Assembly (NCBI GenBank): GCA_002269645.1
Contig: NIVC01000467.1
Span: forward strand, 248,001 to 312,000
Source: Macrostomum lignano
Lineage: Eukaryota
Length of the DNA: 64,000 nucleotides
Reading direction: 5' to 3'
Shown here: positions 17,778-61,152 of the stretch, piece by piece
Numbering within the stretch: the stretch's first letter is position 1
Layout of the letters: each line of letters begins with the position of its first letter
Notes under the pieces: generated by a model
The model's input: the letters and a program-made list of their open reading frames with translations, nothing else
What the model was told of the DNA's origin: nothing
Databases searched by the model: none
Translations under genes and position numbers: made by a program

Positions 17778-18403
17778 ATTTTGTTCATTCTTTGCCTCTC
17801 TTTTCCCTGTGTTTTTTTCTTGCTTCCCCTCTTTTTGTCAATTTTTTGGGTTGGCATTTTTGCAAATTATCTTGGCCAGACCTCTCACTACCTTCCACCT
17901 AGTTGAATCAGCAGGGTCAGCCAGTTGTTGGGCATGTATGACTATTAGTCCTTGACCATTCTCATGGCAAGTTAACATATAGGTCTAATAAAAAAAGAAT
18001 AGTGACTTACATATACCATTTTGCCAATAGAAAAAGCCACATAAATCCTTAAGTTCTATTTCATTTTATGTTTTTAGTTGCAGTTTTTATTATTTTTTGG
18101 ATGCACTATAAATATGGTTCACTATATCAATGATTTGTAAAATAATTCAGATGTAGGCCACATGCAGCCTACAAAGCCTCTCTACCTGGCCCTTGGGTCC
18201 TTTAAAACTTTACTATGACAATCTGGCCCACCTAAGGTTTGTGTCTTTTCAGCTTTCTTAACTTTTCTCTCATCTATCTGGCCATTGAAGTAAAAAAGTT
18301 TTCCAATCCCTTGCAATAAATATTCTTTCTTTGCTACTAATCAGTAGGCTATATCTCTGACAGTTTTTAAATATAAAATTTGATACTTTGGTTTTCCAGT
18401 CAC

Positions 18404-21400: not shown

Positions 21401-24400
21401 ACGGGATCCTAAATCCCGAAATCCAGAAATCCGAAATCCTGAAACCACGGGATCCCTAATCCCAAAATTCAAAATCCCTAAACCACGAGATCCCAAATCC
21501 CGAAATTCGGAGATTCCAATTCCCTAAACCACGGGATCCCTCATCCCGAAATCCAGGGATCCGAAATCCCGAAACCACGGGATCCCAAGATCCCGAATCC
21601 CAAAATCCCAATTGCCGAAATTCCAAATCCTGAAATCCCTGGATCCCAATCTCGAAATCCCGGGATCTTAAATCTCAGAATTCGAAATCCCGAAATCCTG
21701 GGATCCCAAATCTTGAAATTCCGGGATCCTTGCAAAAACTTAGGATCCAAATCGATAGTACAATAGATTTGTGAAAGAGATTCGTATGTCAAAAAAAGTC
21801 AAATCGAGTCTGGAAAATTTTAGACAGATTATAAAATTCTGCTTATTAAACTCTATACAATCATTTAAGGTGCAATTTTAGCATGAGTTTCTGAACAGGA
21901 TATGTTCGAATGTACGATATGATTTATTACATGCCTGCAATTCAACAGGTGCCTATTCTCTGTGCCCTGGGATCTCCCGCTGCCCGATCACGGTTTCTCT
22001 GAAGGCCAAAAACTCGAAGCCGTGGATCCGCGCAATCCCGATCACATCTGCGTAGCAACCGTTGCTATAGTAATGGCCAATCGGATATGCATCCATTTCG
22101 ACGGTTGGGATAACACGTACGACTTTTGGACTAAAGTTGATTCGCCAACTATACACCCTGTGGGCTGGTGCGAGCAGCACGACAGAGCTCTGTCACTGCC
22201 CGAGGAGTGGTGCCGGCAGGTGAGTGCGGCTCGCGTCTCAATGCATGCCATTTATATGAATTGGGAAGCGCTAATCCTCAATAGGAGTCGCTAATCCTCA
22301 ATAGGAGTCGCTAATCCTCAATAGGAGTTGCTAATCCTCAATAGGAGTCGCTAATCCTCAATAGGAGTCGCTAATCCTCAATAGGAGTCGTTAATCCTCA
22401 ATAGGAGTCGTTAATCCTCAATAGGAGTCGTTAATCCTCAATAGGAGTCGCTAATCCTCAATAGGAGTCGCTAATCCTCAATAGGAATCGCTAGTTCCAA
22501 ATAGGAATCGCTAATCCTCAATAGGAGTCGTTAATCCTCAATAGGAGTCGGTAATCCTCAATAGGAGTCGGTAATCCTCATTATAGGAATCGCTAATCCT
22601 CAATAGGAGTCGTTAATCCTCAATAGGAGTCGGTAATCCTCATTATAGGAATCGCTAATCCTCAATAGGAGTCGTTAATCCTCAATAGGAGTCGCTAATC
22701 CTCAATAGGAGTCACTAATCCTCAATAGGAGTCGTTAATCCTCAATAGGAGTCGCTAATCCTCAATAGGAGTCGTTAATCCTCAATAGGAGTCGTTAATC
22801 CTCAATAGGAGTCGCTAATCCTCATTAGGAATCGCTAGTTCCAAATGGGAATCGCTAGTTCCAAATGGGAATCGCTAATCCTCATTGGGAATCGCTAATC
22901 CTCATTAGAAATCGCTAATCCTCATTAGGAATCGCTAATCCTCATTAGGAATCGCTAATCCCCAATGGGAATTGCTAATTCTCATTGGAAATCGCTAATC
23001 CTCATTAGAAATCGCTAATCCTCATTAGGAATCGCTAATTCCCACTTTGAATCGCTAATCCTCATTATTAGGAATCGCTAATCCTTATTGGAAATCGCTA
23101 ATCCTCATTAAGTATCGCTAATCCTTATTGGAAATCGCTAATCCTCATTAGGTATCGCTAATCCTCATTAGGAATCGCTAATTCCCACTTTGAATCGCTA
23201 ATCCTCATTATTAGGAATCGCTAATCCTTATTGGAAATCGCTAATCCTCATTAGGTATCGCTAATCCTCATTATTAGGAATCACTAATTCCCATTTTGAA
23301 TCGCTAATCCTCATTATTAGGAATCGCTAATTCCCATTTTGAATCGGTAATCCTCATTTCGAATCGCTAATCCCCAGCGAGAATCGCTAATCCTCACTAA
23401 GAATGGTGCCCAATTCTTCATGTCATATCTAATTTAACAACTGACAAAAATGCTAATCCCCAGGTATTCACCTGGGATCGCTACCTGGAGAGCACCTGTT
23501 CGGAACCGGTGATGCCGGCCGCATTCCGGCCTCGCCAACCGATCCCATTCGATCTGGGCATGAAGCTGGAATTCGTTGATCCTCGCAACACTCGCCTAGT
23601 CCGCATTGGCACCGTAGTTGATCCCAATCCTTATCCGGGATTTCTACAAATCCTACCAGACGGCTGGGGCGAGAAATTCGCTTTCATCACGCTGGACAGC
23701 TCGATGGAGCTGCTGCCAGTTGGCTATTGTCATCGAACCGGCCATCCCTTGGAGCCGCTGCCTACCTGGCACGATAGCGAGAAGTTCACCTGTCCAACCG
23801 TTGGCTGCCGCGGCCTAGGCCACGTCAAAGGTCCGGGTTATAAAAGTCATTCAAGCATTAAAAGCTGCCCCTACGCTGAACGGAACTCGCATCGGGAATT
23901 GCCTGACAGATTAGAATTGGAGGCTGATGAAGCTGCCTCTGGTGGAGCTCAGCAGCCGAATGATCAGCAAGCTATTCGAGGATCTAAATTATCGAACAAA
24001 CGATCGTCCCAGGGCAACTCGGCATTTCCAAATCAGTCTAGTCGCCAAGCATCGCCTCATCATCAGCGTCCCGGCTCGCCTGGTTGTCCATTCTATCGGA
24101 GCGTATTTTCGCCTAGCATTTCTCAATACGATCCTTGCAAAGACACTGGGCCGTTGGTGTGGCCTGAGCACACTCAGCTCATACCTTCTCTAGCTAGTAT
24201 TGACGTGTCTGAAGTGCCCAGATGGTCCGTAGCCGAAACTAGCGACTTAGTACGTCAACTACCCGGCTGCGAACCTTTCGCCGACGCTTTCATTGTTGAA
24301 GAGATTGACGGCGATGCGTTTCTACACCTGCAACAGGTGGATCTGTTGAGCATACTCAAAATGCCATTGGGCCCGGCCATTAAATTGGCCCAAGCTATTG

Positions 24401-24432
24401 CCGCTATTAAAGAATGCTTAGAGCAAGCCTGA
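18404..24432 (+). CDS. l(3)mbt: Lethal(3)malignant brain tumor-like protein: low-complexity N-terminus, FCS-like Zn finger, 3 MBT repeats, C2HC Zn finger, SAM
   Basis: Exons 18404-20871, 21949-22219, 23464-24432 (phases 2 and 0). MBT motifs GMVLEGVDP, GQKLEAVDPRNP..HFDGWD..DFW..PVGWC, GMKLEFVDPRN; CPTVGCRGLGH..HSSIKSCP; SAM WSVAET..EEIDGDAFL..LGPAIKL. Confidence 0.92.
21010..21730. repeat. About 46-bp intronic minisatellite, degenerate at the edges
   Basis: ATCCCGAAATCCAGGGATCCCAATTCCTGAAACCACGGG-type units. Confidence 0.9.
22272..23460. repeat. 20-bp intronic minisatellite
   Basis: CGCTAATCCTCAATAGGAGT units degrading toward the acceptor. Confidence 0.95.
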
Positions 24433-26107: not shown

Positions 26108-29100
26108 ATGTCTTACAAAAATGCTTTGATCGATCCTGATTTATTAAACGAAGCATCTCAAAGATCAGACAGCTCTTCTGACAGGAGCAGAGCTTCTTCT
26201 CCAGCATCAACTGGCGATAATATTGGCTGCATTCCTGAGGAACTTGAAGAGCAGTCTGATCGTGAACAAGTCCAAGAAGTCAAGGATGATAATGGAGTAA
26301 AGGATGAAGTCAAGGATGACGAAGTCAAAAATGGTGATGAACTCAATGATGAATTCAAGGATGACGAAGTCGAGGATGACGAAGTCGAGGATGACGAAGT
26401 CAAGGATGACGAAGTCAAGGATGACGAAGTCAAGGATGAAGAAGTCAAGGATGACGAAGTCAAGGATGATAAGGTCAAGGATGATGATGATGTCAAGTAT
26501 GACGAAGTCAAGGATGAAGAAACATCCGGTCAGGTTTACATTAAAGAGTCAAAACGTCCAGCCTCTGTGTCTAACGGATCCCGAACGGACATGGATTTAT
26601 TAAAAGCTATTTTGCATGACGATTCAATTAGCGACGATGTCATCCCAGAGGAAGCTGAAGATGAAGCGTCCGATGTTGACGATAATAATAATGAGCCTGG
26701 TGAACCAGAGCCTACTGTTAGTAGTTGTGCCAATCCAATTCAGGAGAATCCTAACGATGAATGCACTAATGAAAATCAGATTGTAGACGAAGTAGCAGCT
26801 GCAGATTGCGAATCTGTTGGTAAGGCTGAACTTGAGCAGTCTGTCAATGATTCAGAGCAACAGGTGACCGCCAATGAGCCCGAAACGTCTCCAGTTGAAC
26901 CTAAAGAGAAGAAGCGAAAAAAGAAGCAGTCATTGAAAAAGAAGAAAAAGCAACAGAAGCCGTTAGGTCCCGTGGCTCCTTGGTCTCGCGCTTCAATTAA
27001 TTCGTGTTCTAGGCCGCCGCAGCCACATCAACAACAGCAGCAGCAGCAGCCGCCATTGGCTAGCGATCGCTCAACTTCGGCGACAACAATCGGCTCTCTT
27101 GGCGGCGGCAGTCGCGGCTCACGCGCCCCGTCCATGTCAGCTAAACAGTTGCGCCAAAAGTATCGTCCAATCAGTAACGACGAAAAAATGGCGCAACGCC
27201 TGAGCGAGATTGACAGCTTACTAGCCAGAGACTATGCCAACGAGGCTCGATTGGCTTATCAACGCAGCGTAGCCGAATGCCGGCAGGCTTGGCAGAACTA
27301 CGCATCCACGGCTAGAATTATGGGTCACGTGACTGAGCAGAGTGAGCAGACGGAACAGAATCAGCTCGGTATTAGTAGCGGTCAGGCTCGACATCCTCGG
27401 GTAGAGTTTCACGACGGACGAGACAAAGAGTCGGCGACGTCTATAAAGAGAAGTCACCCACTGGGTGGTAGAGTTGCTCCAGAACTGGATAGTCAGAGTC
27501 AATCTCATCCGAGACCGCATCGACATCGACAAGCTACTAATGAGCGTCGTGATGTAGAAGCGCGAACTGTATTTCTAGAATCGGCGCAAGAAAAGCAAGA
27601 ATCTGAACAGGAGAATGAACTGCCTGAAGAGGTTATTGTTGTTTTATTTCTTTTCATTATCGGTTTGGATTCGAAAGACAAACTATCGCTACTACAATTC
27701 TTAAAAAAGTCGGATATAAAACGCCTAATGTTGAAATCCTTGCAATTTTCTTTTATCATAAGATTGAAATCGTACAATGCCAGCGAGTTGAAATTAGGAC
27801 AATTCAAAAGTATCTCGTGGCCGTAGATAGTGGTGCCGTAACCCAGTAAGTCTGGAGCGGCGCTCTAATGTGCCAGCGGCCCAGGCTCGATTCCAAGTGC
27901 AGTCACATTAATTTGGGACTGAATTGGAATCTCGGCTTGGCTCTGCTCGTGCAATTAACGCCCAGCTTGAGGGCCAACCCCCAAGGCATAATGAAGTGTA
28001 CATGCCTAACGATAAATAAAGTTAGGGCCGCTGTACACTCCTGTGTGAGTGTGTGCCTGTACGTATGACTGCGTACGTATCCGCGCGCTTGTGTGCCTGC
28101 TCAGGGGAGTCGGCGGAATGGGGGCAGTGATGCCTCTCACCGGTTGTGTGGCAATGTCGCTTAAAGTGCACCAGGGTGCACACAGCCCCTGACTGTTAAT
28201 AACTGAAACAAATCACAGAGCCTGATCTTCTTATAAATGGATTTTAAATAAAGGATGGAGTTTTCGAGGTTGTGATTTATAGATAGTTGTACTAGTTTTC
28301 TGAGTGAACTACGAGTAGTTCCTGCAACAATCAATCACTTCTTAAATTATAGTGTGTTGTTATTCATTCCGCACCTCAGGTGGTTCAAACGAATGAGGAG
28401 GAGCATTCGCAATCAGCTGAGCAAGATGCGCCCGAAGCAGATGAGAATGATCGAGAGCAAGACCAGCTGCAGCAGCAGCAACAACAACAATTACACGGAT
28501 ATCGAGTTGGCGCACCGCAGCGCATGGCTGGCCGATTTGGTTCCGATCATAAATTATCCGAATCTAATAATCCCGACGTGCGCGCTTGGTTGCGCGAGAA
28601 AAATCGCGCCGAACGTCGGCAACGTCGGGAGGCGCGCGAAGCGAAACGACGCGAAATTCAGGCTCGATTAGACGCGCAACAACGCCAAACTGAGCGCAAA
28701 GTAGACGCAGAGAAGGCGTTTCAATATTGGTCGAAAAAGAAGGCTAACACATTGGCTAAATCAACTGATAAGGATGGAATGTCTGCCAATAACAATAATA
28801 TTGCTGCATCTCAGCGACAGTCAACCGTGCAAGAGGTGAGATTTTGTGCTGACTGGAGTTAGTTTAATGCCGCCTGAAGTGTTTGAGTCGCCAGTTTATC
28901 TGGCGCCACCTCCTCTATCATGTAGTTTATCTGGCGCCACCTCCTCTATCATGTAGTTTATCTGGCGCCACCTCCTCTATCATGTAGTTTATCTGGCGCC
29001 ACCTCCTCTATCATGTAGTTTATCTGGCACCACCTCCTCTATCATGTAGTTTATCTGGCGCCACCTCCTCTATCATGTAGTTTATCTGGCGCCACCTCCT

Positions 29101-32100
29101 CTATCATGTAGTTTATCTGGCGCCACCTCCTCTATCATGTAGTTTATCTGGCGCCACCTCCTCTATCATGTAGTTTATCTGGCGCCACCTCCCCTATCAT
29201 GTAGTTTATCTGGCGCCACTTCCCCTATCATGTAGTTTATCTGGCGCCACCTCCTCTATCATGTAGTTTATCTGGCGCCACCTCCTCTATCATGTAGTTT
29301 ATCTGACGCCACTTCCCCTATCATGTAGTTTATCTGGCGCCACTTCCCCTATCATGTAGTTTATCTGGCGCCACTTCCCCTATCATGTAGTTTATCTGGC
29401 GCCACTTCCCCTATCATGTAGTTTATCTGGCGCCACTTCCCCTATCATGTAGTTTATCTGGTGCCACCTCTCCTATCATGTAGTTACCTGGCGCCACCTC
29501 CCCTATCATGTAGTTTATCTGGCGCCACCTCCCCTATCATGTAGTTTATCTGGCGCCACCTCCCCTATCATGTAGTTTATCTGGCGCCACCTCCCCTATC
29601 ATGTAGTTTATCTGGTGCCACTTCCTCTATCATGTAGTTTATCTGGCGCCACCTCCTCTATCATGTAGTTTATCTGGCGCCACCTCCTCTATCATGTAGT
29701 TTATCTGGCGCCACCTCCTCTATCATGTAGTTTATCTGGCGCCACCTCCCCTATCATGTAGTTTATCTGGCGCCACTTCCCCTATCATGTAGTTTATCTG
29801 GCGCCACCTCCTCTATCATGTAGTTTATCTGGCGCCACCTCCTCTATCATGTAGTTTATCTGACGCCACTCCCCTATCATGTAGTTTATCTGGCGCCACT
29901 CCCCTATCATGTAGTTTATCTGGCGCCACCTCCCCTATCATGTAGTTTATCTGGCGCCACTTCCCCTATCATGTAGTTTATCTGGCGCCACTCCCCTATC
30001 ATGTAGTTTATCTGGCGCCACCTCTCCTATCATGTAGTTTATCTGGCGCCACCTCCCCTATCATGTAGTTTATCTGGCGCCACCTCCCCTATCATGTAGT
30101 TTATCTGGCGCCACCTCCCCTATCATGTAGTTTATCTGGCGCCACCTCCCCTATCATGTAGTTTATCTGGCGCCACTTCCCCTATCATGTAGTTTATCTG
30201 GCGCCACCTCCCTATCATGTAGTTTATCTGGCGCCACCTCCCTATCATGTAGTTTATCTGACGCCACTTCCCCTATCATGTAGTTTATCTGGCGCCACTT
30301 CCCCTATCATGTAGTTTATCTGGTGCCACCTCTCCTATCATGTAGTTTACTGGCGCCACCTCCCCTATCATGTAGTTTATCTGGCGCCACCTCCCCTATC
30401 ATGTAGTTTATCTGGCGCCACCTCCCTATCATGTAGTTTATCTGGCGCCACCTCCCCTATCATGTAGTTTATCTGGCGCCACCTCCCCTATCATGTAGTT
30501 TATCTTGCGCCACCTCCCCTATCATGTAGTTTATCTGACGCCACTTCCCCTATCATGTAGTTTATCTGGCGCCACCTCCCCTATCATGTAGTTTATCTGG
30601 CGCCACTTCCCCTATCATGTAGTTTATCTGGCGCCACTTCCCCTATCATGTAGTTTATCTGGCGCCACTTCCCCTATCATGTAGTTTATCTGGCGCCACT
30701 CCCCTATCATGTAGTTTATCTGGTGCCACCTCTCCTATCATGTAGTTTATCTGGCGCCACCTCCCCTATCATGTAGTTTATCTGGCGCCACCTCCCCTAT
30801 CATGTAGTTTATCTGGCGCCACTTCCCCTATCATGTAGTTTATCTGGCGCCACCTCCCCTATCATGTAGTTTATCTGGCGCCACCTCCCCTATCATGTAG
30901 TTTATCTGGCGCCACCTCCCCTATCATGTAGTTTATCTGGCGCCACCTCCCCTATCATGTAGTTTATCTGGCGCCACCTCCCCTATCATATAGTTTATCT
31001 GGCGCCACCTCCCCTATCATGTAGTTTATCTGGCGCCACCTCCCCTATCATGTAGTTTATCTGGCGCCACCTCCCCTATCATATACGGTTCCTATGACAA
31101 AAGCGTTTTCGCCAACTCTCTGCAGCCGTTGCCACTATCGGATCAGGAGGCCGCATTCGCAGCCCTGGAGAATCGGCCCCGTCAGGGGGGTCACCGGCCC
31201 CCTGGCAGCGCCAAGCCGGTGCACAATTCCGTGTTTAAACGATCGCCAGCCATCTTGGGCACGGCTGGGGCCAGCTTCTCTGGCAGGCAGGTTCGAATGG
31301 GTATTATTGGACAGCCGCTTGTTAAATCAGAAACTGGTCCGCTTGTTCATCGCGGCGAACAGCTGGCTATTGAGCAGCAGCAGCAGTTTGAGGTGAGCAG
31401 CCAACCGTGTTGCGGCCGGCCACTCTGACATCGTCCCTTAACCAGCGTTGAGGCAATACTGTACGCAGGCACGCACTCATAGACACGCTCACACAGGGTG
31501 TACAGCGGCCCAGACTTTCTAATCGCGACGCATGTACACTCTGTGCCTTGGGGGTTGGCCTTCGTGGCTGTGAATTGCACGGCAACCCACCTGGCCAATT
31601 TCCCAATGAAGGCTGGGAATTCCCAATCATACATAGAGAAGATGGAAAATTCCCTATCTAACATTGGGAAGAGGGGAATTTCCAATCAAATATTGCAAAA
31701 AGGGCAATTCTCAATTGAACATCTTGAAGATGGGGAATTCCCAATCAAACATTGGGGAGATGCGGGATCCCAATCAAACTTTGGGAAGATGAGGGATTTC
31801 CAAACAAACTCTAGAAAGATAGGGAATTCCCAATAAAAAATTGAAAATATGGGGAATTCCCGATCAAACATTGGGGAGATGGGGAATTCGCAATCAAAAT
31901 TGGGGAGACGGGAAATTCCCAATCAAACTCTGGAAAGATGTGGAATTCCAATTAAACTCGGGAAAGATGGGGAATTCATAGTCAAGCATTGAGAAGAAGG
32001 GAATTCCCAATCAAACATCGGGAAGATGGGGAATTCCCAGTCAAACAGTTGTAAGAGGGGGGAATTCCGAATGAAGCATTCAGCTAGGAATTCGAAAAAA

Positions 32101-45249: not shown

Positions 45250-46273
45250 CGCTTTATTGTATCTTGTCTGCAGAGTATTTGTCTGAAATGTGTCTCTTAT
45301 CTGTATTTTGATGCATGTCAATTTTGCAGCATTTTGTCTGTTTATTTGTTTACTAATGTTATATTTATTAAAATCTAATATTAATAAAATCCCATGATTT
45401 TCGAATTTGCTCTATTATAGTCTACTACAAGTAGAGAACAGTTATTAATAGAAGCTTGTAATACAAACATGGCAATTATTATTATTATTATTGGTATTAT
45501 TAATTTATAATGCTCCAGGCTCCGGCAACGCAGTAGTGTCCAGTCTACTCAACTATTTAGGCGAATTTCATCCCGACAATTTGATTCAACACGCCGCTTT
45601 GAGCTTAGTGAAGCACCGGCCTGACAGCCTTATTAACCTAGATGTTGGTGTTATACAGACGCCTACCAATACTGATCGACCTTTGCACTGCGTCCTGTCT
45701 GTCACCTGGGGCCTCATTGCCGATGTTGACGCCGAGAGTGAACGCTTTCGCATCCTGGGCGGAGCTCGCTTCGGCCTGTTGCTAACTAAGAAATGCCTAG
45801 CAGGTATTAAACGCTACCGAGGCAGATTGTCCTACCTGCCAGCTGACCCAGCTAATCAATTGATAGATTCTCTGCCAAATTTTGATCAACCGGTTCCAAC
45901 TAGTTGGACAGTGTTAGAACGGGACTTCTACACAATTGGAGCCTTGTTAATGTCTCATTTAGCTGAGGATTTTTTCCCAGTTACCGACTGGCAACCAGAC
46001 GACGGTCTGTGGCGCCTGTTCTGCGTCTATCCGTGCTCTCGGTCGCAGTTTCTGCGCGGTTTCACCGGCGCTGCCAAAGGTCGATTAGAAGGCGACTCGA
46101 TTGAAGTGATTCGAGCTAGGGCATTCCGCTTGGAGCCTCTGACACCTGGTGGTCACATGATGATTGATGGCGAACCAATGAGCTATGGCCCAGTTCAGGG
46201 CTGGGTTATGCCCGGAAAAGTCAGGGTGCTGATGAGCGGCAAGTGTCAGGACATGCCTGCTGGGGATAAATAG
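42872..46273 (+). CDS. SPHK: Sphingosine kinase (DAGK-type catalytic domain)
   Basis: Exons 42872-43218, 44728-45020, 45519-46273 (phases 2 and 1). LLNPRSGSGKA, VSGDGLVYEVVN, PAGSGNA, WGLIADVDAESERFRILG, IDGE. Confidence 0.93.
43245..44530. repeat. ~21-bp intronic minisatellite with 332-bp higher-order repeat
   Basis: GAGGGTCTGTACAGTTTTATT; identical ORFs 332 bp apart (43842/44174, 43955/44287). Confidence 0.95.
45130..45270. repeat. (TCTG)n microsatellite
   Basis: Direct reading. Confidence 0.9.
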
Positions 46274-47283: not shown

Positions 47284-48426
47284 TATCGAAGCATGTGCGA
47301 TTTCTAATTGCAATGGCTACCAATAGCTAATGTATTGTTTTGTTTGCAAACTCAATGTTAATGGTTTTGCCTGATATTAACCGACAGTTTTTGGGCTAAG
47401 AGAGCATTCTATTTTCTTTTTGCCTAAAAATGCGCAAAAATGAATGAAACCCATTCGAAAAAGCAATTTTTTAATATGTTTTTTTTGCACGCAAAACGCG
47501 GCCATTTTGTTTGTTTACGGTCGATCGGATGTAATAAATTTAGAACAATGACAAATTCATGTCTTGAAGCCATACAGAACTGTTTGTTTTATTTAAATCC
47601 TAAACATATATTTATAAAATTTATGTATAATGCCAATTTTAATTATTAAACAGCACTGTAAAACACTTTCAATAATTGGTGCTTAATATGTGTTCTGTAA
47701 GATCAGTGGCTTATGTAAAATCTATAAATAATTATATTTAAATAGCCACTCCAAATGAATGTTTTGTATTGCCTTGCTATATAGCTAGTTTTAAAAGATT
47801 GACGACCATAGCGCCGGGTTCGCAACACATTCAGAAGCCTTCACAGTTTATACAGTTGATTGAATAACATTTTTTCATCTTTTTTTTTAAATTAAAACTG
47901 CGATTTGACTCTTCAATCTAAATGGCTATGTTAATGACATTTGTTAACACTTCAATCACTATGTGAACTTTCTGTCAGAGCAATTGGCAGCCGAAAATTT
48001 TGTTTTCCAAGGTATTATATTATCAGAACAATACTCAAGTCTTGAAGCATGTTTTGTATTGCTTTAGTCTGTGGTCCGCCCACTGTCATTTGGTATTTGT
48101 TACATTGTGACCCGTATAAGTAATTTTAAAATTAGCATATTTTAAAAGATTCACAGCTTTGGAAGGTTGGAAAGTCAAGGGGCCGTAGCCTACAGATAAG
48201 GGCGTCAAATGCGTCACGAATTCGAAAGCAATACAATATGCACTACAATTACTGCATCGGTTTGCGCGAGCCCGCGAGGGCTAACCGCTGTTAGTGCAAG
48301 GGGGGGCTGTTTGGGTGCTGGCTGTCTGGTGGGGTGGTGGGTGCGTTGGTGCGTGCGCGTGCCTATTTAGGCCGCCACCTTTGTGGCTGCGCGGGGTTGC
48401 TCGCGGTTGAATTTTTTTGCTGAATC

Positions 48427-49518
48427 ATGGCAGATAGCCTTGTACTGCCCGCAACTAACAAAGCGCTACGAGAAGCCCTTAGTGAGCGCGGCCTGCCTAC
48501 TAATGGCAATAAGCAAGAGCTAACAAGTCGTCTAAAACTCAGCATTGCCAAGGAGCTTGAGCGGCAGGCGTTGGAGCAGGACAGAGGCTCATCTCGTCGT
48601 GCTCAAGATGACAAGACATCACCGACGAATGCGGGCGCACCCGAGCTAAGTCTGGCTCCACCTGAGGACGAGATGCTACCGGCGGTGGGCGCCTCGGCCG
48701 AGGGTCGGGCGGCGACGGGAGGCGGTCTCGAGGATCAGCTGCGAGAGACTGAACTGCGCATTCGGCTGCTGGACCTGAAAAAAAGAGAGGCTCAGCTCGA
48801 AGCCGAGCTCGCTGAAGCGCGTCACAGTGGCACGGCGGCTGCGAGAGAACGTGATCAGACTCCCGGTGAGTGGCATGATTTGGTTGGCGAGTGTATACTC
48901 GGGCAGGCTGGGGCTGCAACTTCGCATGCTCAGGCGCCGGCGGTGTACAGAGTCGTTGATTTTATCAGTGAGCGTAAGCGGAGACAAGGAAGCCAGTCTG
49001 TTGTGGGAGCGGCAAAGCCAGAGAGGTTGAGACACGTCAGTCCCGAGTCACTGTCGTTTGGCGATTTCATCTCCGGTAGCTGTAACTTACTGGTGCAAAT
49101 GCTGCGTGATGGCAAACTGCTGCGCATTGTTGATGGCAGAATCGATTCATCCGAGTTGATCGATCATCTCCGACATAACGCTAGAATTGGTGACCTGCTA
49201 GATTTAGGCTTCGATCGCACTAAAGTCATGAGATATGATGACGAATGTCGGCTTCTCCAGCATGATGGAACGCGGTGGAGCGCTGTTAGCGCAGACCTGG
49301 GTCTGGTGGCAACACACTTGATGGCACCAACAAAAATGATAAACGCAACAGCGCCTAAAAAGCGAACGCAGCCACCTGTCTGTTTCGACTTCAACAGTCT
49401 TAGCGGCTGCAACAGAACTCACTGCCGCTTCGCCCATCAGTGCCGCAGGTGCTCACAGCCGCACTCTGAAGCCCGAGCCCACGCTGATGGGGACCCGGGC
49501 CAATTTTCAAAAAACTAG
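48427..49518 (+). CDS. Ngaro Gag-like ORF1 with N-terminal SAP-like motif and C-terminal Cys/His finger
   Basis: TNKALREALSERGLPTNGNKQELTSRL; CFDFNSLSGCNRTHCRFAHQCRRCSQPH. Confidence 0.88.
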   Translation: MADSLVLPATNKALREALSERGLPTNGNKQELTSRLKLSIAKELERQALEQDRGSSRRAQDDKTSPTNAGAPELSLAPPEDEMLPAVGASAEGRAATGGGLEDQLRETELRIRLLDLKKREAQLEAELAEARHSGTAAARERDQTPGEWHDLVGECILGQAGAATSHAQAPAVYRVVDFISERKRRQGSQSVVGAAKPERLRHVSPESLSFGDFISGSCNLLVQMLRDGKLLRIVDGRIDSSELIDHLRHNARIGDLLDLGFDRTKVMRYDDECRLLQHDGTRWSAVSADLGLVATHLMAPTKMINATAPKKRTQPPVCFDFNSLSGCNRTHCRFAHQCRRCSQPHSEARAHADGDPGQFSKN

Positions 49519-49526
49519 CGTGCGAG

Positions 49527-51440
49527 GTGGGGGCACAGGACTCAATGTCTGCCGTCGGGTCGCCCTCCTGTGCCCCCACGGGGGAGCTCCCCCTATGTGA
49601 CCCGAGTTCAACTGAGTTGTCGAGCGACCTTGTGTTTGCGGTTTGGCGGGAAGAGCTGGCTGGGACCGAGATGCCGGAGGACCGTGTCAGGTTCGTGCTC
49701 GATGGTGTGAAGAATGGCTTTCGAATTACTAATAAAGTGATGGATTGTAAGAACCACACTGAGATGGCAAATCACAGATCAGCTACCATTCACCAGCAAG
49801 CTGTTGAGGCCCAGGTGCGCCAGGAGCTCAAGCAGGACCGCTACAGGCGCTGCCAGGCAGGCAACCGGCCGCTCATCGTTAGTGCCCTTGGTGCGATCCC
49901 TAAGGCGGATTCGTCTTCCATCCGCCTTATTCACGACTGCAGCCTGCCAACTGGCGCCTCTGTGAATGATTTCTTTGAGTCGAAACGGAAGTTGCGTTTT
50001 ACTTCGGCCAGCAACTTTGCCTCGAAGCTGTACTGCGGCGCGTACATGTGCAAAGTGGATCTGTCGCAAGCATATCGTTCATGTGGTGTGCACCCTGATG
50101 ACCACCGGGTCACAGGCATGAAGATTCAGCTCCAAGGCGAGGGCCAGCCAGTGTACCTGTACGACACGCGGCTCCCGTTTGGTGCTTCGGCTTCCGTCTT
50201 CTGCTTTTACGAGCTGAGCCAAGCTGTGCGTTTTATGATGTTGAAGCATGGTTTCTACGCTATGGAGGCCTACATGGATGACTTCGCCTTTTGTGGAGAT
50301 CTGGAGTCCTGCTGGAAGTTCTACAACCATCTCATCGATCTGCTCGAGCGGCTAGGCTTCACCGTTAACCGTAGCAAGTGTGTTCCGCCGACAACGCGGA
50401 TGACCTTTCTGGGCATTTTATTTGATAGCGTGGCAGGCCAGATGTCTCTTCCTGCCGAAAAAGTCCAAGACTTATTGCATGTTTTATCCCTCTGCTCTTC
50501 GAAGAAAAGGCTGTCAAAGTCGTGTTTGCAGAAGTTGATCGGCAAGTTAAACTGGGCGTCGCAAGTTGTTCGGCACGGGAGAGTTTTCCTCCGACCTCTT
50601 ATCGACATTGTTAACAAGCTGCATCGGCCTCATGACAGGGTTCTTGTTAGTCCCTCCGTGGTGCACCACCTCTCCTGGTGGCGGTTGGCTTTGCAGCATC
50701 GCATCGGTGTTGGCCTGTGGACTTCGCCGAGGGCTTGTGTTGCCATAGAGACTGACTCGTCGTCTTCAGGCGCCGCGGCGGTGCTCCGTGACGGTGATGG
50801 GATTCGTGATTGGTGCTTTATTGACTGGCAGATCGACGCAAATGGTGTTTTTCAGAATTACTGCATCAATTACAAGGAGGCTGTGGTTATATTGCTGGCT
50901 GTTTTGAGATGGGGCCAATCCTTGGCTGGTTGTCGGCTTGCTGTGTACTGCGACAATGAGACGGCGTGTTGGATTCTAAGGCGAGGTGTCTCCAAGGACT
51001 CGCGTCTGATGTGGTTGCTGCAGTCTGTGGCGTTGCTCTGTCTGCGTTTTGACGTTGAATTTGAGGTCTTTCACGTTCCTGGTGCTTATCAGCTGTTTGC
51101 TGATGCAGGGTCCCGCCTGCACTCGCGTCATGAGTTGCTTAATTTTATTTTCCGTGTTTACGGGTCTGTACCAGTTTGCCCTGTGGAGTTTTCGGATCAC
51201 GCGTTTTCTGTTTTTGCCTCCCGTTTTTTATTTTCACAGGCCGCCTCCCTGCAACGCCGACCCTCGGCGCCGCCGCCTCCAGCCTCCTCGCCGCAGCATA
51301 CGCACCGCAGTCACGCAGGGCAATCTCATCGGCCGTCCGGTCCTGGCACAGCTTCTGCAACGAGAACGGGACCAACCCGGCTCGATCCGACCGGTCGGTG
51401 CTACTCAACTACCTGGCTCACCTGGTCGAATGCCGCCTGA
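49527..51440 (+). CDS. Ngaro reverse transcriptase + RNase H
   Basis: RLIHDCS, KVDLSQAY, RLPFGASAS, YMDD, TFLGILFDS; RNase H ETDSS, INYKE, YCDN, HVPG..ADAGSR. The start shown is the track's GTG; first ATG is 49545; frame is open from 49488. Confidence 0.95.
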   Translation: MGAQDSMSAVGSPSCAPTGELPLCDPSSTELSSDLVFAVWREELAGTEMPEDRVRFVLDGVKNGFRITNKVMDCKNHTEMANHRSATIHQQAVEAQVRQELKQDRYRRCQAGNRPLIVSALGAIPKADSSSIRLIHDCSLPTGASVNDFFESKRKLRFTSASNFASKLYCGAYMCKVDLSQAYRSCGVHPDDHRVTGMKIQLQGEGQPVYLYDTRLPFGASASVFCFYELSQAVRFMMLKHGFYAMEAYMDDFAFCGDLESCWKFYNHLIDLLERLGFTVNRSKCVPPTTRMTFLGILFDSVAGQMSLPAEKVQDLLHVLSLCSSKKRLSKSCLQKLIGKLNWASQVVRHGRVFLRPLIDIVNKLHRPHDRVLVSPSVVHHLSWWRLALQHRIGVGLWTSPRACVAIETDSSSSGAAAVLRDGDGIRDWCFIDWQIDANGVFQNYCINYKEAVVILLAVLRWGQSLAGCRLAVYCDNETACWILRRGVSKDSRLMWLLQSVALLCLRFDVEFEVFHVPGAYQLFADAGSRLHSRHELLNFIFRVYGSVPVCPVEFSDHAFSVFASRFLFSQAASLQRRPSAPPPPASSPQHTHRSHAGQSHRPSGPGTASATRTGPTRLDPTGRCYSTTWLTWSNAA

Positions 51441-52219
51441 GATCGTTCAACAGTCTGCGTGTCCATGTCAGTGCACTGTCCAGCTGGTTCAAAGCCTGTG
51501 GTGCTGAGGACCTAGCAAAACACCACCTGGTCTCACTGCTCGTTCGCGGCGCTAAACGGAGGATGGGCCAGCGACCAAGACGGAAGCTGCCGATCTCGCC
51601 TGCGATGCTGCTGTCTGTGAAAAACCGGCTTAACTCGAGCAGTTCGCTTGACAGAGTCTGCTGGCTTGTGACGCTTATTGCTTGGTGGGGGATGTTTCGG
51701 CGCTCCAGTCTCCTGCCCAGTCAGCAGTCCGCTTCACCGATTTCCGTCTCAGCCTTTCAACGCCACCCGAAGGGGGTTGTGCTCTCTGTCAGTTATGGCA
51801 AGACGAATCAGTTCGGCGCGAAGCTGCACCGGGTGTTGCTTCCAAGGCTAAAAGAAGGACATCCGCTTTGCCCAGTGGCTGCGCTAGAGGGTCACCTCCG
51901 TGTCAGCAAGCTTGGCTGCAGGCAGCCTGTGTTCTCCTACCAGTTGGCGAGCGGATCCTCTGTTGTCCTGTCTGCCTCAAGATTCGACAGGTTCCTCAAG
52001 CGCTGCCTAGCAACTGCTGAGCAGGACGCTCGTTCTTTCTCAGCGCACAGCCTGCGCAGAGGTGGTGCCACCTGGGCCTACCGTCTCGGACTATCTGTTC
52101 AGGAGGTGAAGTGCATCGGTGACTGGCGAAGTGATGCTGTGACTGCCTACCTTCCATCTGCTGATTCTGTGCGGGCTGGTTCGCGTTTTGCTGGTGCTTT
52201 TAACGAGAGTTGCCTTTGA
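51176..52219 (+). CDS. Ngaro tyrosine recombinase
   Basis: N-terminal AYAPQSRRAI..W.SFC; catalytic R (MFRRSSLL), K (GKTNQ), HSLRRGGA, GDWRS, Y (AVTAY). The track start is a TTG. Confidence 0.95.
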   Translation: MPCGVFGSRVFCFCLPFFIFTGRLPATPTLGAAASSLLAAAYAPQSRRAISSAVRSWHSFCNENGTNPARSDRSVLLNYLAHLVECRLRSFNSLRVHVSALSSWFKACGAEDLAKHHLVSLLVRGAKRRMGQRPRRKLPISPAMLLSVKNRLNSSSSLDRVCWLVTLIAWWGMFRRSSLLPSQQSASPISVSAFQRHPKGVVLSVSYGKTNQFGAKLHRVLLPRLKEGHPLCPVAALEGHLRVSKLGCRQPVFSYQLASGSSVVLSASRFDRFLKRCLATAEQDARSFSAHSLRRGGATWAYRLGLSVQEVKCIGDWRSDAVTAYLPSADSVRAGSRFAGAFNESCL

Positions 52220-53619
52220 GTAACTTTTGCTTGTGTTCAAAGTTTTATTTCCGTTCTTATCCCCAGCCTTATTTCCGCCGTTTCGTAAATTCTCTCCTTC
52301 GTTCATTCATTTGTTTGTTTGGCCTTGGGGTTGCATCCTCTGGCTTTTCGCTGCCTCGCCATCGCCACACTCGGTTTGTCTTGTCTTTGCCTCCCCTTCA
52401 CTAATGCATCGGTTTGCGCGAGCCCGCGAGGGCTAACCGCTGTTAGTGCAAGGGGGGGCTGTTTGGGTGCTGGCTGTCTGGTGGGGTGGTGGGTGCGTTG
52501 GTGCGTGCGCGTGCCTATTTAGGCCGCCACCTTTGTGGCTGCGCGGGGTTGCTCGCGGTTGAATTTTTTTTTCCTCGCTAATTATAATTTTTAATCAGTT
52601 TAATTCGTTTTAACAAGTCATGAAATAAATACGATCGTCTGAGGGTTGCATCCTCTGGCTTTTCGCTGCCTCGCCATCGCCACACTCGGTTTGTCTTGTC
52701 TTTGCCTCCCCTTCACTAATAATAGTAGTGTATCTGTTATGTCATTTATTGGCTTTAAAGACATTAGTAGCACGGTTTTTTATGCTACTTTATTAATATT
52801 GTTATTATTATCATTAATTTTTTTATGATCAATATTTCACACACCGTTTTGACTGAGGATCAAGAGTCTCTCTCGCATTGTCTGTTGTTGTTGTCGAGTT
52901 CAAATCAACTTATCAAACGATTTATATAATTACTATTATATGGTATTGCATATATGCTTGATTTTTGTTCATTACTGACTTTCACTGTTAAAGTAATATT
53001 TGTATTAGTAATTTTTATTTACTAATAAATTCACGAACAATTGATTTAATATCCTTTGTCAAAAATGAGTGGTGACAAATCAGATTTTGATTTAATTTGT
53101 TTATTTAAAGTACATATATTCTAATTTTTTACTATTTTAAAACTTTCAGCAAAAACATTAAGATAAACTAATAACTTTATCAGCAAGAATCAATATGCCT
53201 TTGGTAAGGTAAGTATTAGTCATATACTTATTTATAACTGTAATTTATGAGCCAACGCAAACTGTATCGCAGCAGTACTTGTCAGTGTCAAACGTTGCTA
53301 TTGGCTACTCGAACTTCGGCCAATAGCGCTCGTTCCTTTAGTTAGATTTGGCCAGCAAAATATCAGCTATTCTCCTCCCCCACGCGATTCCCTATTAAAC
53401 CAGTTTTTGCGGTCAGTGAATCCTTCAAACGGTTATTAAGCGTTGCTCATTAAGCTATCTGAGTCTGTGTACTTTTGCTAATCTAGAGATTATTCTGACA
53501 GAGCGCCGCCCCAGCGTCTCTGCGTCTGACTAATTAAACTCTTGCTGTGCTGTTGGCATTTTTACCATCGAGTGTTCTCTTTTGGCCTGCCGGTCAATTG
53601 GTAAGAAATGCTTTGGGGT

Positions 53620-57689: not shown

Positions 57690-59660
57690 GTGTGATGTGT
57701 CTGAATGTGTCTGTCCTCTATCCTTATGATGTGTCCGAATGTGTCTGTCCTCTATCCTTATGATGTGTCCGAATGTGTCTGTCCTCTATCCTTATGATGT
57801 GTCTGAATGTGTCTGTCCTCTATCCTTATGATGTGTCCGAATGTGTCTGTCCTCTATCCTTATGATGTGTCCGAATGTGTCTGTCCTCTATCCTTATGAT
57901 GTGTCTGAATTTGTCTGTCCTCTATCCTTATGATGTGTCCGAATGTGTCTGTCCTCTATCCTTATGATGTGTCCGAATGTGTCTGTCCTCTATCCTTATG
58001 ATGTGTCTGAATTTGTCTGTCCTCTATCCTTATGATGTGTCCGAATGTGTCTGTTCTCTATCCTTATGATGTGTCCGAATGTGTCTGTCCTCTATCCTTA
58101 TGATGTGTCTGAATGTGTCTGTCCTCTATCCTTATGATGTGTCTGAATGTGTCTGTCCTCTATCCTTATGATGTGTCCGAATGTGTCTGTCCTCTATCCT
58201 TATGATGTGTCCGAATGTGTCTGTCCTCTATCCTTATGATGTGCCCGAATGTGTCTGTCCTCTATCCTTATGATGTGTCTGAACGTGTCTGTCCTCTATC
58301 CTTATGATGTGTCCGAATGTGTCTGTCCTCTATCCTTATGATGTGTCCGAATGTGTCTGTTCTCTATCCTTATGATGTGTCCGAATGTGTCTGTCCTCTA
58401 TCCTTATGATGTGCCCGAATGTGTCTGTCCTCTATCCTTATGATGTGTCTGAACGTGTCTGTCCTCTATCCTTATGATGTGTCCGAATGTGTCTGTCCTC
58501 TATCCTTATGATGTGTCCGAATGTGTCTGTCCTCTATCCTTATGATGTGTCTGAACGTGTCTGTCCTCTATCCTTATGATGTGTCCGAATGTGTCTGTCC
58601 TCTATCCTTATGATGTGTCCGAATGTGTCTGTCCTCTATCCTTATGATGTGTCCGAATGTGTCTGTCCTCTATCCTTATGATGTGTCCGAATGTGTCTGT
58701 CCTCTATCCTTATGATGTGTCCGAATGTGTCTGTCCTCTATCCTTATGATGTGTCCGAATGTGTCTGTCCTCTATCCTTATGATGTGTCCGAATGTGTCT
58801 GTCCTCTATCCTTATGATGTGTCTGAATGTGTCTGTCCTCTATCCTTATGATGTGTCCGAATGTGTCTGTCCTCTATCCTTATGATGTGTCCGAATGTGT
58901 CTGTCCTCTATTCTTATGATGTGTCTGAATGTGTCTGTCCTCTATCCTTATGATGTGTCCGAATGTGTCTGTCCTCTATCCTTATGATGTGTCTGAATGT
59001 GTCTGTCCTCTATCCTTATGATGTGTCCGAATGTGTCTGTCCTCTATCCTTATGATGTATCTGAATGTGTCTGTCCTCTATCCCTATGATGTGTCTGAAT
59101 GTGTCTATCCTCTATCCTTATGATGTGTCTGTGATCTACATGTATCCTTGTCATGTATCTGGATGTGTTTGTCCGCTATCTTTATGATGTGTCTTGATGT
59201 AGTTTGTCTCAGTCCTCGATGCTTTGTTTATCTCAGTTGTGGTTGTCCTCTATCCCCAATCTGTCTCAATATGTCTGTCCTCTATCCCTAATCTGTCTCA
59301 ATATGTCTGTCCTCTATCCCTAATCTGTCGCAATGTGTGTCCTCTACCCAAATCTGTCTCAATATGTCTGTCCTCTATCTCGAGTCTGTCTCAATATGTC
59401 TGTCCTCTATCCCTAATCTGTCTCAATATGTCTGTCCTCTATCCCTAATCTGTCTCAATATGTCTGTCCTCTATCCCTAATCTGTCTCAATATGTCTGTC
59501 CTCTATCCCTAATCTGTCTCAATATGTCTGTCCTCTATCCCTAATCTGTCTCAATATGTCTGTCCTCTATCCCTAATCTGTCTCAATATGTCTGTCCTCT
59601 ATCCCTAATCTGTCTCAATATGTCTGTCCTCTATCCCTAATCTGTCTCAATATGTCTGTC
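57690..59660. repeat. 34-bp minisatellite followed by a related 32-bp array
   Basis: TGATGTGTCCGAATGTGTCTGTCCTCTATCCTTA, then AATCTGTCTCAATATGTCTGTCCTCTATCCCT from about 59240. Confidence 0.95.
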
Positions 59661-59842: not shown

Positions 59843-61152
59843 CGAGGGTCACTCAGAAAGTTCTTAGCCTGAACACGAAAACAGCAACAAATGAACTAAA
59901 AAACGACTGCAAGTGCTCAAAATACTCTCCACCGGCATTGATACAGGCTTGCATCCTGTGAAACCAGCTGTCAAAGCACTGCCGCCAATCCTCATCCCGG
60001 AGCTCCGCGATGATGTTTTTGAACTCATTCACAGCTTCTTCCGGTGAAGAAAAGACCTGGCCCTTCAGAATCTCCTTGCACTTCGGAAACAGAAAAAAGT
60101 CGCACGGTGCCAGGTCTGGACTATACGCAGGGTGAGTCATCAGCTGGACCCCACAGTCAGCCAGAAACTCAAGAGTTTGAGCCGCCGTGTGCGCGCTGGC
60201 GTTGTCGTGGTGCAGCAGCACCCCGCACATTCCGCACCTTGGGCGCCTCTGGCTCACAGCAGAAAAGACTTTGGGCAGGCAAACCGTTGTGTACCAGTCA
60301 GCGGTGACTGTCTGGCGATCTTCAAGTGAAACGGAAGCCACATGCCCAGTGCGCATGAAGAAACAGGCCACCATCTGCTTGCCGACACTCCGGCTGCGTC
60401 GAAACTTGGTGGGGCTGTCCTCGTCTCCAAAGGTCCACATGGCTGACTGGCGCTTGCTTTCGGGGTCGTATTGATAAATCCAGGTCTCATCGCCCGTGAG
60501 GATGTCCCAGATACGCCGGCTGGTCCCAGATTCGAATTTCTGCAGCATGAATCGGCACCAAGCCACCCTGGTGTCCTTCTGCACGTCCGACAGCTGATGG
60601 GGGATCCACCGGGAAGCCAGCTTCCGCACTCCAAGGTGTTCGTGCAGAATGGCGTGCACACTCCCCGATCCAATACCGATCTCCTGCTGGATCTGCTGGT
60701 AGGTCACTCGCCGGTCAGCGGCAATCATGCTGGACACAGCGCAGATATTTTCTGGAGTCACTGCGTCACAGGGTCTCCCGGATCGATGTTCATCTTCGAG
60801 GCTTTCTCGACCTCGGCGAAACTCAGCGAACCAGTTTTTGACGGTTGCGTATGAAGGACATACATGGGTAAAAACGTTCTGTAAAGTTTGATACGATTCG
60901 GCCGGCGACTTGCCTTGCTTGAAGTGCAAGTACATCATTGCTCTGAAGTCGCGATTTTCCAGCTTCATTGTTGAATTGAAGAACTCAGGGGGTGAACTGA
61001 CTTTAACTCGCTGCAGTGGACTCAAAAGTGGCTGCTTCTGTTTGAAATTTTTGTTGCAATACTTTTAAAACTTGGTCTTTACCATAGACAAATTTCATGC
61101 TTCTACGTCTCGTGGATCCTACTCAGGCTAAAGACTTTCTGAGTGACCCTCG
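59843..61152 (-). mobile_element. Full-length mariner transposon, 1310 bp
   Basis: 30-bp TIR CGAGGGTCACTCAGAAAGTTCTTAGCCTGA (28/30 between ends); TA at 59841-59842 and 61153-61154. Confidence 0.97.
59853..60968 (-). CDS. Mariner transposase, DD34D
   Basis: WIPHQL, TGDETW, HHDNA, YSPDLAPCD with 34-residue spacing; uninterrupted ORF from ATG at 60968. Confidence 0.95.
   Translation of the reverse strand: MKLENRDFRAMMYLHFKQGKSPAESYQTLQNVFTHVCPSYATVKNWFAEFRRGRESLEDEHRSGRPCDAVTPENICAVSSMIAADRRVTYQQIQQEIGIGSGSVHAILHEHLGVRKLASRWIPHQLSDVQKDTRVAWCRFMLQKFESGTSRRIWDILTGDETWIYQYDPESKRQSAMWTFGDEDSPTKFRRSRSVGKQMVACFFMRTGHVASVSLEDRQTVTADWYTTVCLPKVFSAVSQRRPRCGMCGVLLHHDNASAHTAAQTLEFLADCGVQLMTHPAYSPDLAPCDFFLFPKCKEILKGQVFSSPEEAVNEFKNIIAELRDEDWRQCFDSWFHRMQACINAGGEYFEHLQSFFSSFVAVFVFRLRTF

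Follow-up and report, generated by a model that had tools for sequence, protein, structure and literature searches.

A probable -1 ribosomal frameshift signal at the gag/pol junction of a Ngaro-like retroelement from the flatworm genome of Macrostomum lignano

How does a retroelement whose gag and pol genes lie in different reading frames make its polymerase? The question is raised by a 64-kb stretch of Macrostomum lignano DNA (the window, in whose numbering all coordinates below are given), which contains a Ngaro-like element encoding Gag, a Pol that carries a reverse transcriptase (RT) as well as an RNase H domain, and a tyrosine recombinase. Here we propose that Gag-Pol is very probably made by -1 ribosomal frameshifting at 49509–49515, a proposal drawn from the sequence of the junction and from its counterparts in distantly related elements. 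The signal is of a well-known kind, found here in a retroelement order where it is apparently undescribed.

The 3' end of gag reads TCA AAA AAC TAG, and the -1 frame, after a TGA at 49485–49487, is open from 49488 to 51440. Both observations had been made in a first-pass annotation of the same DNA, which placed the heptamer in the gag frame and the start of the open pol frame at these positions, and both were reproduced from the sequence. The features of the junction, with the two open reading frames (ORFs) that meet there, are as follows.

48427–49518, + strand: gag ORF, 363 amino acids, with stop codon UAG.
49488–51440, + strand: pol ORF, in frame -1 with respect to gag, from open-frame and domain search.
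49488–49518, + strand: gag/pol overlap of 31 nucleotides (nt), the sole stretch that permits a shift into the pol frame.
49509–49515, + strand: slippery heptamer A_AAA_AAC in the X_XXY_YYZ phase of gag, the codon before it being UCA.
49516–49518, + strand: gag stop codon UAG, directly 3' of the heptamer.

The entire gag ORF contains two in-phase X_XXY_YYZ heptamers, C_CCG_GGC at 49494 and A_AAA_AAC at 49509, both of which fall within the 31-nt overlap, and the string AAAAAAC has a single occurrence in the 4.47-kb element. A large recoding review counts such heptamers among the shiftiest on eukaryotic ribosomes (PMC5009743).

If this arrangement matters for expression, it should be visible in related elements. 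The best pol matches are only 50% identical to that of the window, and their contigs are here called L001, L002 and L003; a further 80 metagenome loci, with pol 31–41% identical, were also compared, and each junction was scored for the conserved start of pol, the upstream ORF with a CCCH finger (gag) and the relative frame of the two. A gag search for closer relatives returned a single cluster. The 65 junctions that could be classified (pol 31–50% identical to that of the window) comprise 27 with pol in the -1 frame, the window included, 32 with gag and pol in the same frame and separated by one stop, and six with pol in the +1 frame, while a fused gag-pol ORF was found at none of the 65.

The heptamer follows this classification closely. 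An in-phase A_AAA_AAC lies inside the overlap, 0–36 nt before the gag stop, in 22 of the 27 -1 loci; among the others one has A_AAA_AAT, one G_GGA_AAC and one U_UUA_AAC, leaving two without any such site, so that a shifty in-phase heptamer is present in 25/27. Across the 38 loci of other arrangements, the last 150 nt of gag never contain an in-phase A_AAA_AAC. The association of the heptamer with the -1 class is strong (Fisher p = 6.6e-13), and the chance of at least 22 of 27 arising from the background rate of the heptamer is about 1e-41. We treat the -1 loci as independent families, because RT-block identity reaches at least 80% in three locus pairs only, none of them within the -1 class (26 of whose 27 loci are in the tree). 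Since 21 distant relatives keep the same heptamer in phase and three more keep a related one, the signal is almost certainly a real one, and the Gag-Pol fusion by -1 frameshifting that the annotation had proposed gains strong support from this contrast between 25/27 and 0/38.

Conservation extends to the codons that make up the site. Of the 23 heptamers with A as their first base, 22 use AAA AAC, and the codon that supplies the first A (49507–49509 in the window) is NCA in all 23, whether CCA, TCA, ACA or GCA. This codon encodes Pro, Ser, Ala or Thr, and the near-invariance of the nucleotides despite the varying amino acid therefore argues that the constraint acts at the nucleotide level; the C just 5' of the heptamer may itself belong to the signal. 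The pol/recombinase junction served as an internal negative control, and there any in-phase heptamer is found in only four of 30 loci that have the recombinase in -1.

A different route to the polymerase would be for Pol to be made alone, with the heptamer incidental, either from the AUG at 49545 by leaky scanning or internal entry, or by reinitiation after the UAG at 49516–49518. Such an AUG does exist in the pol frame, 29 nt past the gag stop, and in L001 one overlaps the gag stop, in the string UGAUG. As a rule, though, independent initiation is unlikely, because in 20 of the 27 -1 loci the pol frame contains no AUG ahead of the conserved pol block; moreover, the AUG at 49545 is located in the loop of a very stable stem, and an independent start leaves the phase-locked heptamer unexplained. 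We consider this route very unlikely. Production of Pol from a spliced mRNA was likewise rejected: acceptor-like motifs are not enriched before pol in either the -1 or the in-frame class (p = 0.76 and 0.34 in these two large classes), and no splice-acceptor-like motif was found before pol. The annotation had named both alternatives, the AUG at 49545 and a spliced RNA, among the findings that would count against frameshifting; the first has a real AUG in its favour, and the comparative evidence speaks against both.

The frame change could also take place in the RNA, if a polymerase stuttered on the A6 run and an extra A in some transcripts put pol in frame. The site does hold a run of six As, and one more would open the -1 frame. 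Stuttering is indifferent to codon phase and to the next base, yet the run is in phase in 23/23 cases and is followed by C in 22, and a long homopolymer is missing from the relatives that carry G_GGA_AAC and U_UUA_AAC. Six As are in any case short for stuttering by a cellular RNA polymerase, and we regard this explanation as extremely unlikely. Homopolymer runs are also hot spots for indels and sequencing errors, which raises the question of whether the frame change is simply damage to a dead copy, or an assembly error in what is truly a single gag-pol ORF. Here the three ORFs are intact and the split repeats 99–100% identical, the same A6 arrangement recurs in 21 independent assemblies as well as in the L001 family, where four contigs from as many sequencing runs show it, and a fused gag-pol is absent from every classified junction; damage or error is scarcely credible as an explanation.

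Frameshifting would then proceed as follows. An unspliced RNA would be translated from the gag AUG, and most ribosomes would stop at the UAG at 49516–49518 and release Gag. A minority would slip back by one base on A_AAA_AAC, the tRNAs on AAA (49510–12) and AAC (49513–15) re-pairing with AAA (49509–11) and AAA (49512–14), so that the next codon would be CUA (49515–17) in the pol frame and the product a fusion of Gag with RT/RNase H. We infer the slip and the fusion from the anatomy of the site together with the comparative evidence. By analogy, the fusion presumably delivers the polymerase to Gag assemblies in a low, fixed proportion, and it would act unprocessed, because the element is without a protease.

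What, if anything, helps the ribosome to slip? Downstream of the heptamer the RNA can form two adjoining hairpins, and the features in question are these.

49516–49526, + strand: spacer of 11 nt between heptamer and stem.
49527–49579, + strand: stem-loop with a perfect stem of 14 base pairs (bp; 49527–49540 with 49566–49579) and a 25-nt loop, the proposed frameshift stimulator.
49580–49593, + strand: second hairpin, GGGGG-AGCU-CCCCC (GGGGGAGCUCCCCC), which abuts the stem.
49555–49561, + strand: loop segment UCGGGUC, a possible pseudoknot arm that pairs with 49599–49605.
49599–49605, + strand: GACCCGA, the downstream partner in the possible pseudoknot.

The 5' arm of the stem (49527–49540) is GUGGGGGCACAGGA, and 10 of the 14 bp are G-C. 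This is the only perfect hairpin of at least 14 bp with a loop of at most 40 nt in the 64-kb window, the chance of such a hairpin being 0.02 per window and 0.0015 per element in Markov-1 resamples. In every folding context tried, the pair probability is 0.98 for the 14-bp stem and 0.97 for the small hairpin; stem and second hairpin together amount to about -42 kcal/mol, and the stem beats 12 of 12 control positions within the element. The annotation had described both the perfect stem 11 nt downstream of the heptamer and the GGGGG-AGCT-CCCCC hairpin, and had remarked that the spacer is longer than usual; each of these descriptions holds, the last against a published optimum of 5–8 nt. The models suggest, with somewhat better than even confidence on our part, that the stem-loop is the stimulator of the shift. 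Together with the abutting 5-bp hairpin, the 14-bp G+C-rich stem-loop would most likely raise the frequency of slipping by resisting unwinding, a step that is less secure than those above.

A canonical -1 signal has a spacer of about 5–8 (9) nt, a range that the 11 nt of the window exceed. In published work the best spacer is 5–8 nt, with steep losses outside this range and changes of 1–2 nt costing 2- to 5-fold in the systems tested there (PMC3458567). Given this optimum, the 11 nt of the window genuinely weaken the case for a role that is mechanical only. The stem begins 8 nt from the end of the stop codon and might exert its effect on a ribosome that has paused there, with UAG in the A site. 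In some folds a closing helix would reduce the 11 nt of spacer; it is context-dependent and not robust, and was set aside. A pseudoknot fared little better: a 7-bp pairing between the loop and downstream sequence is possible both in the window and in L001, each being marginal against shuffles (p about 0.04–0.09), and for the window 201–360 of 5000 shuffles also reach 7 bp, so that the possible pseudoknot 49555–49561/49599–49605 is suggestive only. No Rfam family matched anywhere in the window.

The same region was then compared across the -1 class by taking the best hairpin starting 4–12 nt after the heptamer in 25 loci, with 12 control positions for each. A generally conserved downstream hairpin was rejected, there being no excess over controls (Wilcoxon p = 0.25); five of the 25 loci (the window, L001, L007, L043 and L069) beat all of their controls (p = 0.04). 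Since there is no excess across the class, the stem appears to be lineage-specific and its stimulatory role a putative one. The conservation in relatives to which the annotation had pointed as a check is thus found for the heptamer (the same in 22/27, a related one in three) and not for the downstream structure, which shows no clade-wide excess. Several relatives have C-rich tracts after the heptamer, which were considered as a protein-binding motif and rejected; such tracts also follow the stop in the readthrough class, and for this reason what they encode is probably a linker rich in proline.

Among the relatives the L001 family comes closest (pol 50% identical). It is known from four contigs, 99.5–99.8% identical, that come from the four sequencing runs SRR31628392, -394, -403 and -425. 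Its junction reads CCA AAA AAC UGA and is followed by a 7-nt spacer and a stem of 9+9 bp, in which there are a bulge of 9 nt and a loop of 21 nt; in sequence this stem is unlike that of the window except at the base. Covariation within the family was sought and proved uninformative, as the junction is identical in all four contigs. The distance from the heptamer to the first conserved pol block is 134 nt in the window and 131 nt in L001, against a median of about 68 nt elsewhere and 66 nt from the junction to the conserved pol block in the sister readthrough loci, and the surplus of about 67 nt in the window and L001 is the size of the structured module. As a separate observation, the gag stop and pol-frame ATG of L001 overlap as TGATG at 1057–1061 of that contig, directly after the heptamer, a termination-reinitiation-like arrangement beside the frameshift signal.

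These comparisons bear on a further explanation, in which frameshifting does occur at the heptamer and the hairpins serve RNA packaging, dimerisation or the binding of a protein of the element or the host, and not as a mechanical block. A spacer of 11 nt ill suits a stimulator that works by mechanics alone, most relatives of the -1 class do without a hairpin of this kind, and the second hairpin, GGGGGAGCUCCCCC at 49580–49593, is a perfect 14-nt palindrome and hence self-complementary. Set against this, L001 has an analogous long stem at a canonical 7 nt, the structured module is inserted exactly after the shift site in both the window and L001, and a stem 8 nt from the stop codon would be favourably positioned to meet a ribosome that pauses with UAG in its A site. 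We consider it rather unlikely that the hairpins serve such other purposes instead.

Several points weigh against -1 frameshifting as we have set it out, or against parts of it. All of its support is computational, and the relatives are known only as short metagenome contigs. A pol-frame AUG is available at 49545. The 11-nt spacer lies outside the 5–8 nt range, hairpins 4–12 nt downstream are not stronger than controls across the 25 -1 loci, and the structured module is shared by two independent sequences only, those of the window and L001.

The remaining classes of junction suggest that relatives of the element reach the same end by other means. In the in-frame class (32 loci, including L002 and L003), gag and pol are split by a single stop, which is UGA in 23 loci, UAG in nine and UAA in none. 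The UGA is followed by C in 20/23, often as CUA or CUC, and the UAG by G in 7/9, contexts of the type that favour readthrough (PMC4132726; PMC4178896). These 32 relatives thus resemble gammaretroviruses of the murine leukaemia virus type, in which gag and pol share a frame and the UAG between them is read through (PMC4178896), and their UGA-C contexts resemble the UGA-CUAG of known readthrough (PMC4132726). Readthrough is not used by the element in the window, being an alternative device of its relatives.

The six +1 loci (L010, L014, L024, L042, L050 and L058) form one clade in the RT tree, and within the overlap each of the six has CCN CGU UUU CGU in the phase of gag. Its UUU_CGU core matches that of the influenza A PA-X site UCC_UUU_CGU (PMC3498833) and fits the UUU_CGN +1 motif of amalgaviruses (PMC5052127); the E-site codon is CGU, as opposed to UCC in PA-X, and the motif is absent from the element in the window. 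We suggest CGU_UUU_CGU as a candidate site of +1 frameshifting in these six loci, on the basis of its sequence. The -1 and in-frame classes are interspersed in the rough RT tree, where the window and L001 (-1) are sister to L002 and L003 (in-frame).

How the third protein is expressed is a related question, and the features that bear on it are these.

48482–48487, + strand: splice-donor-like site GTGAGC (CTTA/GTGAGC, cut before GTGAGC), 18 codons plus 1 nt after the gag AUG, in phase 1; its role is a proposed one.
51213–51239, + strand: splice-acceptor-like site, a polypyrimidine tract plus CAG, with the AG at 51238–51239.
51240–52219, + strand: tyrosine-recombinase coding region, -1 relative to pol, in a frame open from 51143.
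51962–52147, + strand: Phage_integrase match (Pfam) in the recombinase ORF.

The Phage_integrase match is weak (22.1 bits against a Pfam cut-off of 27.1), and homology of the recombinase is clear by tblastn to 51 relatives. Its frame has no in-frame ATG before 51563. The acceptor-like site sits exactly where conservation of the recombinase frame begins, and a polypyrimidine tract plus YAG is found at that point in 50/51 loci, with a mean tract score of 12.9, compared with 8.8 for the control positions (p = 9e-22); the codon phase in which the exon starts is the same in 49/50 loci, irrespective of the frame relative to pol. The donor-like site is in phase 1, compatible with the acceptor-like site before the recombinase ORF, and over the initial 240 nt of gag, donor-like GT sites are enriched in this matching phase: 13 loci have sites scoring at least 8 of 12 in phase 1, against four and two in the other phases (p = 0.002). 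From these sequences we infer that a spliced mRNA which retains the gag AUG serves for translation of the recombinase, the evidence being strong for the acceptor and moderate for the donor.

A second -1 frameshift was also considered for the recombinase. T_TTT_TTA at 51224–51230 is the sole in-phase X_XXY_YYZ in the pol ORF and lies within the pol/recombinase overlap. It was rejected as the main reading on three grounds: the scarcity of any heptamer there among relatives with the recombinase in -1 (the four of 30 given above), the variation among relatives in the frame of the recombinase relative to pol (-1, +1 or 0), and the position of the heptamer inside the conserved polypyrimidine tract before the CAG.

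Taken together, the junctions may point to a broader scheme, to which we would give an even chance: as a group, Ngaro-like elements would follow an undescribed, retrovirus-like programme of expression, in which the unspliced RNA yields Gag and also an uncleaved Gag-Pol by three interchangeable devices that swapped repeatedly within the clade (-1 frameshifting at NCA_AAA_AAC, readthrough of UGA-C or UAG-G, and +1 frameshifting at CGU_UUU_CGU). The recombinase would come from a spliced subgenomic mRNA whose intron, of phase 1, takes out the whole of pol and most of gag, and it would borrow the gag AUG.

Comparison with known systems places the junction among familiar signals. Like those of retroviruses and long terminal repeat (LTR) retrotransposons, it has a gag/pol overlap, pol in the -1 frame, a top-class heptamer near the end of gag and a stable downstream RNA structure, and the ratio of Gag to Gag-Pol is presumed to be fixed. 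Unlike them, the element has a tyrosine recombinase, split direct repeats and an 11-nt spacer, and it has neither a protease nor a DDE integrase, so that the fusion would not be cut by an enzyme of its own. The element shares only the junction mechanism with retroviruses and LTR retrotransposons, not membership. The yeast L-A totivirus makes a capsid-polymerase fusion by -1 frameshifting and uses it without proteolytic processing; it differs in being a double-stranded RNA virus with an RNA-dependent RNA polymerase, and has no sequence relationship to the element. Protein-dependent frameshift signals with long spacers, in which the stimulator lies more than 10 nt from the shift site, are those of cardiovirus 2A and arterivirus nsp1-beta. 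Their likeness to the present case lies in the long spacer only and serves as a lead, no trans-acting protein being evident for the element in the window. The gag/pol signal of human immunodeficiency virus type 1 has a plain stem-loop stimulator and no obligatory pseudoknot (PMC4373837; PMC3458567), to which the junction in the window is alike; the window has a different heptamer, a longer stem (14 bp) that lies further off, and a second stacked hairpin after it. Among animal LTR elements, 28/51 have pol in the -1 frame, many with classical heptamers, according to a 2003 survey as summarised in a review (PMC5009743).

For the tyrosine-recombinase elements themselves, expression of the proteins is essentially undescribed. 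Papers on them note only that ORFs overlap (PMC9210276; PMC3783388), and for Ngaro the ORFs are said usually not to overlap (PMC3266345; PMC9210276). In the literature searched, which excluded the founding Ngaro papers (Goodwin & Poulter 2004), no slippery site, frameshifting or readthrough is given as an expression device of Ngaro or DIRS1, and the available portion of the large recoding review does not mention these elements (PMC5009743). The remark in the annotation that such a fusion had not been demonstrated for DIRS-order elements agrees with this literature, a prior mention being possible in the founding papers that it excluded. A phase-locked A_AAA_AAC in two dozen independent families strongly suggests recoding as the way in which Pol is produced, fused to Gag, in an element without a protease, and this has a bearing on packaging of the polymerase. 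The clade also allows three recoding devices to be compared in nature at junctions that are homologous, and the three devices plus a spliced recombinase message are a more interesting lead than a single signal. Sequencing data for M. lignano, a laboratory flatworm, exist, so the frameshift claim can be checked with descriptive data.

The assignment of the element to a class rests on the following features, in addition to those given above.

About 48250–52720, + strand: the entire Ngaro-like tyrosine-recombinase retroelement, from split direct repeats and domain content.
48250–48418, + strand: split direct repeat A1 of 169 nt, which matches A2 at 99% identity.
52402–52570, + strand: split direct repeat A2.
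52328–52405, + strand: split direct repeat B1 of 78 nt, which matches B2 at 100% identity.
52643–52720, + strand: split direct repeat B2.
48454–48537, + strand: SAP domain in gag (Pfam).
49381–49437, + strand: CCCH zinc finger, C-x8-C-x5-C-x3-H, in gag.
50013–50417, + strand: RVT_1 in pol (Pfam).
50739–51008, + strand: RNase H (RT_RNaseH) in pol (Pfam).

The element is 4.47 kb long, all three of its ORFs are without interruption, and no further copy was found in a search of the 64-kb window. The repeats are ordered A1 ... B1-A2-B2, the split-direct-repeat layout of Ngaro (PMC6681497; PMC9210276), and the gene order gag, RT/RNase H, recombinase is that of Ngaro. A Pfam domain search of the element found no protease, DDE integrase or methyltransferase domain, and a repeat and domain search found neither LTRs nor retroviral-type domains. 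By domains, gene order and repeat layout the element is of the Ngaro-like (DIRS order) type, and the name Ngaro given to it in the annotation is borne out by the RT/RNase H and recombinase domains and the split direct repeats.

Two minor observations concern its anatomy. Gag pairs a SAP DNA-binding domain with a CCCH finger, not with the CCHC knuckle of retroviruses, and the CCCH finger is common to nearly all related loci. In L085, a contig of the closest relative, 30 nt at 1–30 are repeated at 4148–4177, so that the unit measures 4147 nt, nearly the 4152-nt spacing of A1 to A2 in the window; ends of this kind are what a de Bruijn assembly would produce from a split-repeat element, from a tandem copy or from a circle.

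Elsewhere in the window, a host gene of L3MBTL type (MBT repeats, zf-C2HC, SAM) with long open stretches occupies 18380–24432, and within it an ORF at 23509–24429 (MBT, zf-C2HC, SAM) is 99% identical to a Macrostomum lignano UniRef protein. Just upstream of the element, an ORF at 45491–46273 has a YegS_C (lipid-kinase-like) domain, and an ORF at 59856–61025 on the - strand encodes a mariner/Mos1-like transposase that has HTH_48 and HTH_32 domains and a partial DDE domain. Some 25 minisatellite arrays built of 12–55-nt units (for example at 7334–9373, 28893–31082 and 57693–59660), together with one 4-nt array, make up roughly 32% of the window.

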